Shown piece after piece: positions 35,720 to 63,500 of a stretch of 64,000 nucleotides of DNA (its first letter is position 1; each line of letters begins with the position of its first letter). A program made the translations under genes and the position numbers. A model generated the notes under the pieces. It saw only the letters and a list, made by a program, of their open reading frames with translations. It made no database searches and was not told the DNA's origin. The DNA is from Octopus sinensis (taxonomy: Eukaryota): positions 2,790,001-2,854,000 of the forward strand of contig NC_043025.1 of the NCBI RefSeq assembly GCF_006345805.1, written 5' to 3'.

Positions 35720-36700
35720 TCTCTTTTAGTGGGGTGTCTTTTATCCCCGAGTGTTGGAATATGTTGGATCCCGAGAGAGACTGCGGCCTAATGGGCCTGA
35801 ATATCATGTAGAGAATATAACAAAGAAAATACTTCAATGAAGACATTGAGGCGTGCGCAGTCTCGTGTTAGTGTAACATTGATGGAGTGAAAGTAGACAT
35901 GAACGTGTAGAAGACAAATCTACGTCCGGTGCTTTGATTGGAATGTAGCTGTTTGTGAAATGTTGATTACTTGAACAATGACAGTTGAATGACCTGATAA
36001 TACTAATTAGATAAATGATCGTAAATCTAATCAACATGATACATTTTGCAAGTTTTAACATTTTAGTGGAATGTTTAAAACAACAAATGGAATCAATGCA
36101 TCTTCCGGTGGTATTTGATCTTAGTCTGCGGTATTACAGTATTTCATCTAGAAAACGAACGGTAGCAACAGATCAGATTTAACCTTTTATTTAACAATTC
36201 TAAAGCTTACATTGATAACATTAAATTGGCAAGAAGATAGAATATCAATATAATTTCAAATCATGCAATATTTTCTGTTTCAAGCCATAGTGAGGCCCTG
36301 AAACTTGCTTAAATTACAATATGGTGGATTGGATTATACAGTCTCATGCATGCATAGTGTTGTATTGAAACGTACAATTATAGTGTCGTTACAAGGAAAA
36401 CATATTTCATATTATATATGGAGAAAATATTATTTTATATTATTTATGAAGAAAATATTTTTTCATATTATATATGGAGAAAATATTATTTGGTATTATA
36501 TATGGAGAAAATTTTATTTTGTATTATATATGCAGAAAATATCGTTTTATTGCATAAAATATCATCAAAGACGATTCTTGGAGGCTCTTTTTCGATTTTC
36601 ATTCAAAAGTTTGTTTCTACTGTTCTATCCTCTGTTCCATTACCAGTTCTTGAACCTGGAAACATAATGAAAAAACATAAAAGATAAAATTTTAAGCACA
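35720..36700 (-). repeat. Inverted paralogue of the gene A terminal exon and 3' region (about 27500-28370)
   Basis: Colinear, diverged reverse-complement similarity, e.g. ttcatgtctactttca and aggc(t/c)cattaggcc blocks. Confidence 0.8.
36410..36549. repeat. 28-bp minisatellite x5 (tattatatatggagaaaatattatttta)
   Basis: Five colinear imperfect units just downstream of the gene C stop codon. Confidence 0.9.
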
Positions 36701-36879
36701 TTAATTACCGGATAGTATTAATTTGCATATATGTATATGTTTATTTCTTACTATTTGAACTGTTAGAGCTATTTTCGCTATGTATCCAGTGCAACCCTTA
36801 AACAAGTAAATAATATTTCCCTAAACAATAGATCAGCGTATTTCAGTTAGTGACTTATTCACGAATATACCATGAATGA

Positions 36880-37190
36880 CGATGCCTTTCACGTTACTTC
36901 AGCCAATTGACAAGCGCTGATGGAAGAACTGTTCTGCTTTTAGACAAATACACTGTCAACACAAAGGTCACATCCTGTTTACATGTAGGAACACTTTCTT
37001 AAAATCTATCTGTACATCTTGAAAATGGCCAGCATGCATATTTCACAGAAGACAATGCTCGAAACGTAGATATGAATTCATGAGGAACTACTTTGACATC
37101 TTTCTTCAAATTATGCCAATGTGATCTGTTTGCCCGAACACTGTTGTACGTAGAGATCCCCGTGTACTCTACCTGGGCACACAATATATA
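36880..37190 (+). mobile_element. Helitron RepHel coding remnant
   Basis: A plus frame reads LENGQHAYFTEDNA...*GTTLTSFFKLCQCDLFARTLLYVEIPVYSTW, matching the Helitron LENGQRVYF..TTLTAFF.LC..D.FA.TLLY.E.P.YYTW block. Confidence 0.8.
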
Positions 37191-60200: not shown

Positions 60201-63200
60201 CCTTTCTTTGAATAAAGTTCCCTTGATGGGATTGGTATGTTTTTCATAGAATAATCTATGTAATATGAGTCCATATTAAATTCTTCTGTGTGTAAGAGTC
60301 CTCAACCGATGTTAGGCGATAATCCAAATAAGCCGTATTAGCTCTTAGTGAAGAAAGCGTCGTCCGGGAGGTAATTTATTGGTAAAAACGGTAAGATAAC
60401 AAAAGAAAGAGACCTCAATATTATGTAAATAGAGGAAATTTATCTCTATCTATCTATCTATCTATCTATCTATCTATCTATCTATCTATCTATCTATCTA
60501 TCTATCTATCTATCTATCTATATATATATATATATATATATATATATATAGTTTTAAAGATATTTAACTTTGAGAAAGATGGTGTTTTGCAACGCAGGAC
60601 TTGATTAGCTTAATGTTATAGCGTTGCTACATATATACAGTTCTCTCTGTATTTTTATGTTTTTGTTTGCTACTTTATAATAATATACTGATAAAACACT
60701 TAAACATTTAATTGAAAGTTTGAATTTGTATATTGTGTGTCACAAGTACAACATTCTTTATTATCGTGATATTTAAAACGTACGATAAAAACAGGAGTGG
60801 AATGTTTGGAACAAAAATAAACAAAATTTGAATAAAAGTGATAAAAGATTTTGCTTACCCACAATATTCAATTGTGAATGTTCCTGTCGAGGTTAACTCA
60901 CGTTCCATCTGCAAGAGTCGTATATATATATATATATATATATATACTTACATACAAATACATACATACATATATATATATATATATATATATATATATA
61001 TATATATATATATATATATATATATATATATATATATATTTATATATATATATAAATCAATAAATGGTGGGGTTGTGTTGACCGCACGTGGAGAAACGAT
61101 AGGCAAGGAAAAATTGTAAAAAGGCAGAATGCTAAACTGAAAGAAAATTTTAACGAAAATGGGTGTATGGAAAATATTGAAAAATTGATAAAATATATAT
61201 ATTAATTCAAACCGGTTTTCGTCATAATGTGACTTTTCAAGAATTGTAAAGAAAAAAAAATTTTTTTTAAGTGTGAGGAGGGGGAAAAAAGAAAATTACA
61301 TTGTTTTATGCAAAAAAATAATAATAAATATATACAAAACTTAAAGAATAGGTACTCCGATACATTGTAAAGTCTTTGTGTATCTTGAGTTTAATGATAG
61401 TTCACCAAAAAATTACCTTGAAGTATTGAGATCCAATGGGATTAAATCCATGTGTTGTTTAATTTAATTAAGGGTGTCTCTTAAGTGAATGGCAAAACAG
61501 GAAGTATTAGTCCAGAACTTTTTTCTTTACAATTCTTGAAAAGTCACATTATGACGAAAACCGATTTGAATTAATATATATATATTTTATCAATTTTTCA
61601 AAATTTTCCATACACCCATTTTCATTAAAATTTTCTTTCAATTTAGCATTCTGCCTTTTTACAATTTCTCCTTGCCTATATATAAATATATATATATATA
61701 TATATATATATATATATATATATATATATATATATATATATATATATATATATATATATATATATATATACATATACATATATATATATATATATATATA
61801 TATATATATATATATATATATATATATATATATATATATATATATATATATTTATATATATATATATATATATATATGTATATATACATGTGTGTGTATG
61901 TGTGTGTGTGTGTGTGTGTGTAAACACAAAGCCAGTCAATAATGATGTGGCGTGTTATTTACTGTCAGTCAGAATCGGAGATAATATAACGGAATATAAA
62001 AATGATGTATTCCGACTAAAGATAAGATGGTGGATAGAATAGTCTTTTTATTGACCAGCACAAATATCACATTCAATGAAATTAACAGTTTCGCCTATTA
62101 CTAAATGGAGTTGATTGTCTGAATTTCATGAAATACAAGTTATTCTTATTCTCTTACTACCGTCTACTTCATGTTCATGTCTCAGCATATTTACGTGTGA
62201 ATATAAAAGTCCGTATATACTTACATACGTACAAATTATGTACATATCGATTATATTAGATAGCCCATGTTCAATTTCTACCAACTTAGATCTAATGATG
62301 AGGCCGTGAATTTGAGTTTGGTTTGATGAGCCTACTCTGACCAACTGGTTCAACCTGGCTTGGCAGAGGGGTACAATTTTTTATACTCTTACCCAGGAGT
62401 ATTTAAAGTGATTAAGTCAACACACACGGGCACACACAACCATTACTTATTTTATTGATCCTGAAAGGACGAAAGGCAGAGTCAGCCTCGGTGGAATTTG
62501 AACTCAAAACGTAAGACGTACGAAATACCGTTAAACATTTTGTCCGGCGTGCCAACGACTCTTCTAGCTCACCGCAGAATATATAGTGAGTCAAATAATA
62601 AATACATACGCACATAAATACTTATCTGTATATATGTATATATATATATATATATATATATATATATATATATATATATGTGTGTGTGTGTGTGTGTGTG
62701 TGTGTGTGTGTGTGTGTGTGTGTTTGTGTGTGTTGTGTGTTTGTCCCCCTAGCATTGCTTGACAACCGATGCTGGTGTGTTTATGTCCCCGTCACTTAGC
62801 GGTTCGGCAAAAGAGACCGATAGAATAAGTACTGGGCTTACAAAAGAATAAGTCCCGGGTTCGAGTTGCTCGATTAAAGGTGGTGCCCCAGCATGGCCGC
62901 AGTCAAATGACTGAAACAAGTAAAAGGGTAAAGAGTAAAAGAGTATATTTTATATATATATATACATATATATATACATATACATATATATATACATACA
63001 TATATATATATATATATATATATATATATACATATATATATATATGTATGTATGCATGTATTTAACATGTATTTATATATTTATGTTTGAGTGGATCAGG
63101 CGAAACTTCAAATAGCTGTTGTTTTAACGAAATCAATATTTACTAAAGATATTGAACCCATTATTTGTTTGCTGCTTTCCCTTTCTTCTGTAAGTGTGTG

Positions 63201-63500
63201 TGTGTGTGTGTGTGTATGTGGGCGTGTGTGTGTGCGTGTGCGCGTGCTTATATGTGCAGAAAGAAAGAGAAAGAAAGGAAAAGAGAGAGAGAGCAAATAT
63301 CTACTCACAGCTTTTGATAAGTTCTCAGCAGAGATTTTATATTCGCTGAACTTTTTAAAAGTCAAATGGAATACGAAGAAATTGGTCCAGTCTATGGAAG
63401 GATAAAGAAGATAATCATTGCCTTTATAAATTAGGCACACATCAAAGATTCGCACAAACCCATATACGTAGATAAATATACAATCTGCATAATCACACAT
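45676..63500 (-). CDS. Paralogue B: open signal-like/SEA/HormR exons only (63309-63500, 60859-60908, 51152-51309, 47252-47366, 45676-45845); no GAIN or 7TM exons found
   Basis: Five exons with canonical splice sites and compatible phases give 228 open codons ([15 protein letters not shown]...SAENLSKA|[17 protein letters not shown]|LDRNRTIF...LFDE|MVCDEST...ATRHC|[10 protein letters not shown]...DIDD). The last three exons match gene A exon lengths exactly (158/115/170). Confidence 0.75.
48405..48795 (+). mobile_element. SINE family 2
   Basis: tgtgtggtaagaagcttgctt..ggttccaggttcagtcc..gggcaagtgtcttcta head; cagcatgaccgcagtcacatgactgaaac tail. Confidence 0.85.
48900..49135 (+). mobile_element. 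Penelope-like RT thumb fragment
   Basis: [29 protein letters not shown]...A.RI..I.S...L..RNYP in ORF 48795..49157. Confidence 0.85.
51719..52173. mobile_element. MITE with 29-bp TIRs, 8-bp TSD and internal (TTAGGG)n
   Basis: TIRs ggatcttttcggtttgaacggcagttttt / aaaaactgccgttcaaaccgcaaagatcc (1 mismatch); flanks ggctattt / ggctgttt; TTAGGG-type repeats at about 51820-51887. Confidence 0.85.
52380..53935. mobile_element. Foldback element with long inverted arms and about 15-bp subterminal repeats; left arm interrupted by a SINE
   Basis: 52994-53170 is the reverse complement of about 53500-53675, and 52395-52530 of about 53770-53920 (actcaacac repeats). Confidence 0.78.
52552..52978 (-). mobile_element. 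SINE family 2, full length, nested in the foldback element
   Basis: Near-consensus head and tail. Confidence 0.88.
55480..57345 (-). mobile_element. Penelope-like element (RT thumb, C-terminal GIY-YIG, GA-rich spacer, pLTR-like region)
   Basis: ORFs 56766..57065 and 56402..56788 (RGYP; PC.RPRC.TC; [26 protein letters not shown]; V..HF...H); upstream FLD.S....T....K.TD.H.YL...SSHP. Confidence 0.9.
55493..55532 (-). ncRNA. Minimal type-I hammerhead-like ribozyme motif
   Basis: TCTTT-CTGTTGA-A-GAGC(GTAG)GCTC-GAAACGTA-AAAGA: stem I, stem II and palindromic ACGT stem III; A6 to U deviation in the core. Confidence 0.6.
57442..58154. mobile_element. AT-rich MITE-like segment with perfect 18-bp TIRs
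   Basis: ctgctgaagttaaaattt at 57442-57459 and its exact reverse complement at 58137-58154; no clear TSD. Confidence 0.55.
58160..60440 (-). mobile_element. Near-full-length inactivated Penelope-like element with C-terminal GIY-YIG (probably Hydra clade)
   Basis: ORFs 59228..60274 and 58162..59157: DKSKNLY, RLINP, MGSYDGA, YKGD (broken YRDD), NFLDV, IIWF.PPYS, CSC..K..CPL.G.C, IYEA.V..VGLTEG.FK. Frameshift at about 59240-59270; (TATC)n at the 5' end. Confidence 0.85.
61100..61678. mobile_element. MITE with about 160-bp, nearly identical TIRs
   Basis: taggcaagga..aattgtaaaaaggcagaatgctaaa... matches the reverse complement of 61520-61678. Confidence 0.88.
62725..62940 (+). mobile_element. SINE family 2, 3' half
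   Basis: gacaaccgatgctggtgtgttt...cagcatggccgcagtcaaatgactgaaac. Confidence 0.85.

Follow-up and report, generated by a model that had tools for sequence, protein, structure and literature searches.

Does a stretch of octopus DNA that carries extracellular exons of a G-protein coupled receptor of the adhesion class (aGPCR) on one strand, facing a complete receptor gene on the other, encode a soluble receptor ectodomain, and if so, from what kind of gene? The stretch in question, here termed the window, comprises 64,000 nt of the Octopus sinensis genome (GCA_006345805.1, CM016887.1:2,790,001-2,854,000). A first-pass annotation made from the DNA letters alone had described a full-length receptor, gene A, and on the opposite strand a duplicate, gene B, read as a candidate stand-alone secreted decoy of about 245 aa, next to a separate gene C. 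The structural core of that description holds as far as the sequence goes: B duplicates a receptor and, over the portion covered by the window, shows no membrane anchor, and it faces a full-length paralogue in which GPS and 7tm_2 are present. The gene model is a different one. B and C are probably one longer gene rather than two, hereafter termed B/C, and we lean, with some caution, towards reading it as one transcription unit, a derivative of an octopus leucine-rich repeat (LRR)-type aGPCR gene without the seven-transmembrane (7TM) part.

Nine minus-strand exons, running from 63391 to 36603, form one open frame of 289 aa within the window, and all their borders are AG/GT (Table 1). The five exons originally assigned to B (exons 1-5, with exon 1 extended to 63500) do amount to 685 nt or 228.3 open codons with AG/GT borders; as stated then, the exon 5 donor at 45676 is in phase 1, read-through beyond it ends in GERANVFK and a stop, and the terminal exon joins in frame at a phase-1 acceptor and closes the frame, giving …DIDDGSRTGNGTEDRTVETNF before the stop codon. 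Between 45676 and 36655, three further in-frame exons connect both halves into a single frame, which lends no support to a division between B and C. These exons 6-8, presumably the former gene C, are a direct partial copy of exons 1-3. The same exon chain is found in Octopus vulgaris, where protein P0001 (CAI9744523, 426 aa; P and L numbers denote proteins and loci) is 93.4% identical to the B/C open reading frame over all 289 aa. P0001 runs from exon 5 into WTKSF…, MEHEF… and VQSELRR… and then into the SRTGNG… tail, and exactly these exons are held by the window; P0163 (CAI9744522) is a longer transcript of it. Neither O. sinensis nor O. vulgaris has a lesion in any of the 16 splice sites or 289 codons, exon 6 is joined to exon 5 in P0001, P0002, P0004, P0015 and others, and the same chain could be rebuilt exactly at the O. 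sinensis loci L001, L002 and L007.

Where this gene starts follows from its orthologue. P0001 and all paralogues begin exon 1 at the acceptor at 63391 in phase 1, and in P0001 this exon is preceded by an LRRCT and a domain rich in Cys; coding must therefore begin past 64000, where the LU, LRR and any signal-peptide exons of B/C would be located. At the paralogous locus L004, distances of 2.3 and 4.4 kb separate exon 1 from the LU exons upstream of it. The first-pass annotation had instead placed the start at 63500 and proposed a hydrophobic N-terminus. We rejected this start and its signal peptide, since the stretch between 63500 and exon 1 is intron and occurs in none of the 166 family proteins fetched, no in-frame ATG, that at 63500 included, is conserved among eight paralogous copies, and the n-region of the leader would be acidic.

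The intron end itself is conserved to an unusual degree. About 135 nt upstream of every acceptor of a first module exon (63392-63526 and 41628-41762 on the minus strand of the window; two copies each in L001 and L007, one each in L002 and L004) are conserved like exon, with mean pairwise identities of 87.6% for this stretch and 86.1% for the exon. It is open in the exon frame for about 40-45 codons in all eight copies and part of none of the gene models fetched. A role in splicing, an alternative acceptor missing from the annotation (the window copy has in-frame AGs at -93 and -30) or chance might account for this.

B/C carries a SEA-like module 1, a HormR, a truncated SEA-like module 2 and a tail exon, and no GAIN, GPS, Stachel or transmembrane (TM) segment. 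A tblastn search with four full-length family receptors (E<5) returned only ectodomain exons on the minus strand, and neither there nor at any position above 28 kb did it detect GAIN, GPS or 7TM; the earlier statement that no GAIN or 7TM exon lies between 45676 and gene C thus stands. With neither GAIN/GPS nor 7tm_2 found in its sequence, B/C is best described as derived from an aGPCR without being one. The HormR, once called complete, does keep the Cys/Trp framework of this domain (C...WP.T..G...C...A.R.C...G.W...C, reading VCDE...VATRHC... in B/C) with an extra Cys and an insert of ~20 aa, and C237, W251, R271 and W301 are invariant or nearly so across the family, while its match to Pfam HRM (PF02793) falls below the cutoff (E=0.005, 17.6 versus 26.2 bits, profile positions 9-64 of 66).

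For the modules, structure prediction and a representative search were run on the orthologue P0001 in place of the spliced window protein, with an AlphaFold2 (AF2) model built on a 52-sequence alignment. The model gives module 1 the beta-alpha-beta-beta-alpha-beta order that had been proposed as SEA-like (strands E143-150, E174-184, E187-196 and E230-232, helices H159-173 and H202-214), with block-mean predicted local distance difference test (pLDDT) values of ~76-89, compared with mostly 63-79 in LU and 31-60 in the HormR. The window module has no match to Pfam SEA (PF01390) at E<=10, and only the module of an Argonauta homologue matches that profile (E=3.6e-4, 21.1 bits versus a cutoff of 26.4, positions 4-100 of 106). 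A Foldseek search of the whole P0001 model against the PDB gave no match at E<=1e-3, only generic ferredoxin-like (E>=0.01) and LU hits, with no SEA entry in the top 50, and a module profile searched against PDB sequences gave neither SEA nor any other convincing match. The SEA autoproteolysis motif G|S[VI]VV between beta2 and beta3, which is not universal among SEA domains, is absent, B/C reading EYCG-LDRNRT there. "SEA-like" is thus fair for the predicted topology, and distant homology to SEA is plausible. The Cys-rich domain of P0001 showed weak LU/three-finger structural matches in the Foldseek search against the PDB (Lynx2). Most family modules keep a Cys pair (…VEYCG…, …IYCTV…); module 1 of B has lost the second Cys (IYSKR; 51152-51309, minus strand), as has the full receptor P0071, and module 2 (38078-39831, minus strand) has lost both, along with strand beta3.

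The terminal exon had been regarded as an orphan. It is homologous to the cytoplasmic tail exon of the full receptors and is the inverted homologue of the last exon of gene A (27526-27578); full-length paralogues end alike after TM7 (…AGRRFGNEIEDRRAETNF in P0071, …GKSSRCGNETENIAAETNF in P0061). The C-terminus fits a predicted class I PDZ ligand, [S/T]-x-hydrophobic, with …ETNF in B/C and …ETNI in gene A, a motif that would be topologically irrelevant if the B/C protein were secreted. Judged by this homology, the exon is no orphan; the receptor's own tail exon, together with its 3' flank, is re-used as the last coding exon.

This layout is shared by a family. As an exhaustive HMMER search together with a profile search showed, at least ten O. 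vulgaris and O. sinensis proteins combine two modules, HormR and tail and have no GPS or 7TM (among them P0015/P0082, P0087, P0091, P0094, P0096, P0100, P0105 and P0080, as well as P0098 and P0101 with a partial first module), and no GPS-containing protein in the set carries two modules. Several of them open with a classical leader, MFHHVVSYRRSLVLILCTILFLETQA followed by DSD, and continue with LRRNT, LRRs, LRRCT and LU. B/C matches these proteins in the following features: module 1, HormR, a module 2 without beta3 (…VEYPGVQS.LRR…), the tail …TGNGTEDR..ETN[FL], and no GPS or 7TM. Annotated isoforms of paralogues skip the HormR, skip exon 8 with a frameshift (…GFKYW and stop), or read through after exon 5 (…DDGERANYF and stop, P0090) or after exon 8. 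Deletions and exon skipping stay in frame where whole sets are concerned, because the module and HormR exon sets are all phase 1-1. A more distant relative, the 47% identical Octopus bimaculoides protein P0088, comprises LRR, LU, module, HormR and a complete second module, and at its locus no GAIN or 7TM exon was found in the ~4 kb up to the LRR exons of the next gene, nor in the 10 kb fetched downstream. Derivatives without 7TM are thus recurrent in octopuses, and may be old. A protein search with the HormR end, module 2 and tail returned O. sinensis NCBI models only, with no transcriptome-derived proteins and no other species, and a skin-mucus proteome paper (PMC10138644) mentions LRR proteins, none of which could be assigned to the 7TM-less family.

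Several gene models of this family have peculiarities of their own. The P0088 locus, annotated as "toll-like receptor 5", contains remnants of a second HormR after the second module (L006 70424-70540 and 72336-72512, CM046629.1); the C-terminus of its model (TLPEMWYIPKCPQISM) is HormR exon 5 read out of frame, and P0023 ends likewise. At LOC115226146 of O. sinensis (L001 10001-10058), P0002 starts with MHGLYWLLRRHLCNKNDF, whereas P0015, its orthologue in O. vulgaris, has …CTGCCVGHLCNKNDF at this place. Apparently, a frame difference of 1 nt within the LU exon has turned one gene into two O. sinensis models of 412 and 307 aa; it could be an assembly indel or a real lesion.

How did the locus come about? 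By sequence comparison, B/C is pieced together from duplicons and bears signs of sequence exchange, because its 5' half matches a full-receptor locus, its 3' half three 7TM-less loci, and its HormR segment gene A. From 64000 to 47133, the window shows 92-95% identity, across introns and a Penelope-like insertion as well, with L004 (CM016887.1:1,446,318-1,479,765), which lies at 1.45 Mb on the same chromosome, 1.35 Mb away, and goes on into GAIN, GPS and 7TM. From 47422 to 35603 it is 89-92% identical to 7TM-less loci of the same chromosome at 0.92 Mb (L002), 2.08-2.13 Mb (L007) and 3.17 Mb (L001). The B module exons share 92-98% nucleotide identity with L004, and ~90% amino-acid identity with the O. 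vulgaris full receptor P0071. A 1.86-kb inverted segment comprising both HormR exons and their intron (3289-5124 on the plus strand, 47429-45584 on the minus strand) is 90% identical between A and B, whose other shared parts reach 66-75% identity, a picture that resembles the outcome of gene conversion between paralogues in inverted orientation. O. vulgaris P0001 has the mosaic too, and by accession number P0001/P0163 come directly after CAI9744521, the orthologue of gene A, an indication that the synteny of gene A and B/C is conserved in that species. Hence the arrangement is older than the split of O. sinensis and O. vulgaris, and no artefact of assembly.

The change from L004-type to 7TM-less-type sequence lies near exon 4. 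Intron 2 of B contains two long open reading frames of 369 and 357 codons from stop to stop (58165-60301, minus strand); they have no Pfam match and carry motifs that by eye resemble reverse transcriptase and GIY-YIG. Probably, the element is a retroelement of Penelope-like type carrying a single frameshift; L004 has it too, so that it must be older than the duplication. The same intron holds another retroelement fragment with a weak GIY-YIG match (56405-57332, minus strand; E=0.004).

Table 1. Coordinates of B/C, gene A and associated features within the 64,000-nt window
Feature	Position	Strand	Description
Exon 1 in window	63309..63391	-	start of SEA-like module 1 (beta1 and alpha1); phase-1 acceptor CCATAG/AC; AG/GT; P0001 residues 138-165
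Exon 2	60859..60908	-	module 1, beta2
Exon 3	51152..51309	-	module 1, beta3-alpha2-beta4; formerly the SEA exon, 52 codons; phase-1 donor
Exon 4	47252..47366	-	first half of HormR (VCDESTT...); donor GTTCGT, phase 2; 90% identical to gene A 3354-3468, intron included
Exon 5	45676..45845	-	second half of HormR and linker (...DIDDG); phase-1 donor with read-through
Exon 6 (first exon of former C)	41545..41627	-	module 2, beta1-alpha1, WTKSFAFRLILKTLDEYKIPAENISKV; phase-1 acceptor
Exon 7	39779..39831	-	module 2, beta2, MEHEFLTVTGNFRVEYPG; module Cys replaced by Pro
Exon 8	38078..38181	-	module 2, alpha2-beta4 only; beta3 missing; 18 codons shorter than exon 3; phase-1 donor
Exon 9 (terminal)	36603..36655	-	SRTGNGTEDRTVETNF, then stop codon at 36605-36603; phase-1 acceptor
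Two AATAAA hexamers	36513..36551	-	52 and 85 nt past the stop; candidate poly(A) signals in an AT-rich region where chance matches are likely
Formerly proposed hydrophobic N-terminus (MCDYADC...)	63392..63500	-	conserved 3' part of the intron preceding exon 1; no coding annotation
Gene A	2142..27578	+	full-length adhesion receptor paralogue, convergent with B/C
Gene A, exons including	2142-2299, 3354-3468, 4861-5030, GAIN 6372-9020, GPS 12709-12897, 7TM 13677-24605, tail 27526-27578	+	

The facing gene A is a complete receptor, with module, HormR, GAIN, GPS and 7tm_2 exons spanning 2.1-24.6 kb; Pfam matches its GPS exon at E=1.7e-13 and 7tm_2 at 17794-17900 and 24117-24605 (1.5e-13). It is identical to the annotated O. 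sinensis proteins XP_029652812.2 and XP_036370807.1, named "adhesion G-protein coupled receptor G6-like". Its product matches Pfam GAIN_ADGRA3 (6372-12329, plus strand) and ends in E-T-N-I (27526-27578, plus strand). Because of these two features and the N-terminal LRRs, the receptor family looks nearer to the ADGRA subfamily than to ADGRG6, from which its automated name is taken. On the opposite strand, gene A introns contain retroelement fragments (16756-17606, 21532-22287 and 25209-26483, minus strand; RVT_1 down to 6e-9, zf-RVT down to 4e-8). Microsatellites, namely (TA)n, (TATG)n and (CA)n, abound throughout the window, creating spurious long "YIYIYI" reading frames on both strands and inflating intron indel rates.

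The alternative that deserves most attention is that B/C is a transcribed or silent relic, a non-functional mosaic of segmental duplication and deletion in a gene cluster with fast turnover, whose frame is still open through its youth and through gene conversion from its neighbours. We regard this as quite conceivable, if on balance doubtful, and a number of observations speak for it and against a working gene. Since no gene is called at 27.6-37.6 kb of the window, the 10 kb downstream of gene A that include the 3' end of B/C, and protein searches turned up no protein identical to the B/C reading frame, the copy seems to be missing from the coding annotation of O. sinensis. The ratio of nonsynonymous to synonymous substitution rates (dN/dS) ranges from 0.54 to 0.95 among four 7TM-less paralogues of this species, and five of the six pairs do not differ from 1. 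Exons diverge about as much as introns (4.8% versus 6.6% in L002 and 6.1% versus 7.1% in L001, not significant). The near-identity of the HormR segment to gene A, intron included, suggests conversion, and the 45-codon stretch upstream of exon 1, absent from all fetched models yet open in eight of eight copies, indicates that open frames are cheap here. Module 2 lacks strand beta3 and both residues of the Cys pair, with module 2 and tail mostly below a pLDDT of 50 in the P0001 model, and it is not obvious what a secreted protein would do with a cytoplasmic tail of the PDZ type. LRRCT and LU are present in the orthologue models P0001 and P0163, and these models begin inside the LRRCT or the last LRR, without a signal peptide. 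Decayed relatives are known, such as P0014 with its HormR out of frame, and chimeric or fragmentary gene models with these exons are many (P0021, P0036, P0056 and P0014), as expected of scattered decaying duplicons. What a relic explains less readily is that every splice site and codon survived in two species, that the layout recurs in many paralogues with signal peptides and annotated isoforms, and that the O. bimaculoides gene at 47% identity is likewise without 7TM. One paralogue pair has a dN/dS significantly below 1 (0.54, p=0.007 uncorrected). Between O. sinensis and O. vulgaris, B/C differs at 19 of 289 residues (6.6%), near the 5.1% (7/138) of the module and HormR of its functional neighbour A, the 7TM part of which differs at 2 of 143 (1.4%). 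Each comparison with L001 and L002 shows one in-frame exon indel, where 3-5 would be expected at an intron rate that microsatellites inflate. An older argument for maintenance, that exon 3 stays open at only 22 of 52 residues shared with gene A exon 2142-2299, does not carry over. The count is correct; gene A is the wrong yardstick, because the module exons of B match the L004 and P0071 lineage, and the open 45-codon stretch weakens the argument further. For the same reason, and because the HormR segment has been homogenised with A, the dN/dS check proposed against gene A is uninformative (0.70 for exon 3, 0.53 for exons 4-5, both non-significant). Taken together, the sequence data hardly separate weak constraint or rapid evolution from near-neutral drift accompanied by conversion, the fit being about equally good, and the case for constraint on B/C is weak.

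Two further explanations concern the gene model itself. A stand-alone 245-aa B, starting at 63500 with its own leader and ending by a 45676 to 36655 splice or by GERANVFK read-through, with C as a separate gene, would profit from the matching phase 1 of both splice sites, from P0090 as an annotated counterpart of the read-through form, and from the frequent skipping of whole exon sets among family isoforms. We consider it very unlikely: every fetched family model that reaches the tail passes through exons 6-8 and none joins exon 5 to it directly, exon 1 follows LU exons and is entered at a phase-1 acceptor, and the C exons likewise begin at a phase-1 acceptor with no leader of their own. The direct join is frame-compatible and might yield a possible minor isoform rather than the main product. 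That GAIN and 7TM exons exist downstream of B and were collapsed or misplaced in the assembly is less probable still, to the point of being hardly credible. The region is rich in repeats, microsatellites and duplicons, yet the order of HormR, module 2 and tail, with the same exon junctions, is seen again, with introns collinear, in the O. vulgaris assembly, which is independent, and at three further loci of O. sinensis, and bases 1-37,578 of the window are identical to the overlapping part of the chromosome-scale record of O. sinensis (L003) over the 37.6 kb compared.

The reading we lean towards, a single 7TM-less gene, would have arisen as follows. The HormR-to-7TM exons of a downstream unit would have been lost, the frame staying intact because the exon sets are all phase 1-1, and the old tail exon with its 3' flank would have been taken over as terminator. 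Upstream exons past the window would supply LU (Ly6/uPAR-like), LRRs and a signal peptide, as in P0015, P0080, P0096 and P0105. By its predicted structure, B/C is a soluble-ectodomain gene, whose putative product could bind partners of the receptor ectodomain without being able to signal, and would therefore act as a competitive trap or soluble ligand; a decoy role is thus one that it may have. The copy in the window would be a young, weakly constrained family member of uncertain functionality. More speculatively, an octopus-specific, multi-copy secreted LRR/LU/SEA-like/HormR family may have been made by GAIN-7TM exon deletion with the tail exon re-used as terminator, its soluble ectodomains, B/C among them, trapping or presenting ligands and in this way tuning receptor-cluster signalling in the suckers, the skin and the nerve cord of the arms; we rate this wider proposal as tentative and rather unlikely. 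If true, a hard-wired ectodomain-only family beside full-length relatives would be a natural experiment on aGPCR N-termini without 7TM, and would offer a handle on the ligands of an octopus-specific receptor expansion linked to suckers and the arm nerve cord. Should the copies be no more than relics, they would illustrate at this locus the fast shuffling of exon sets in clusters through phase compatibility. Either way, surveys based on 7TM and automated names ("ADGRG6-like", "toll-like receptor 5", "slit-like") misdescribe these octopus genes.

Known systems resemble parts of this picture. IL1R2 and TNFRSF6B/DcR3 are gene-encoded decoy receptors, in which a binding domain without a signalling part competes for ligand; they belong to unrelated protein families, and by analogy B/C may work in the same mode. 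ADGRG6 (GPR126), after which NCBI automatically names the octopus proteins, has a SEA-type module directly before the HormR. The order of module and HormR is alike in the octopus proteins, which have no CUB or pentraxin domain, and the window module is not recognised by Pfam SEA. ADGRA2/ADGRA3 (GPR124/GPR125) share N-terminal LRRs, HormR and GAIN with the octopus receptors, the GAIN of gene A matching GAIN_ADGRA3, and the PDZ-binding ETTV at the ADGRA C-terminus is resembled by the octopus E-T-x-hydrophobic end. They differ in having an Ig domain where the octopus family has LU and the SEA-like module, and B/C lacks GAIN and 7TM at the gene level. For ADGRA2, soluble ectodomain fragments and transcripts of the N-terminal fragment (NTF) only have been reported (PMC13197933 ref. 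61; PMC6667449 Table 2). An octopus-specific aGPCR expansion, "group 3", has been described as co-localised, with LRRs in some members and accelerated evolution (Ritschard et al. 2019, PMC6408891); the locus belongs to the same type of cluster, and gene A is such a receptor. Members of that expansion were gathered by the 7tm_2 Pfam domain, so that genes of the B/C type, without GPS and 7TM, fell outside its scope. The human aGPCR loci ADGRE4P (EMR4) and ADGRF2 carry pseudogene annotations, and truncated proteins are encoded by their transcripts (PMC13197933). Like B/C, they are aGPCRs truncated at the gene level with an unsettled functional status; they are single loci, whereas the octopus genes form a multi-copy family with rearranged exon order and a re-used tail exon. 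Soluble aGPCR ectodomains as such are already known from shedding and splice variants, and more than half of mouse aGPCR genes yield NTF-only ("soluble N terminus") mRNAs (Knierim et al. 2019, PMC6667449), which likewise encode an ectodomain without a membrane anchor. In these mammalian variants, alternative splicing or premature stops produce the soluble form and the 7TM exons are still in the gene, whereas they are gone from the octopus locus, and the soluble form has spread into a number of separate genes. B/C may thus be regarded as a gene-encoded, multi-copy form of the NTF-only aGPCR products that are otherwise known from splicing and shedding.

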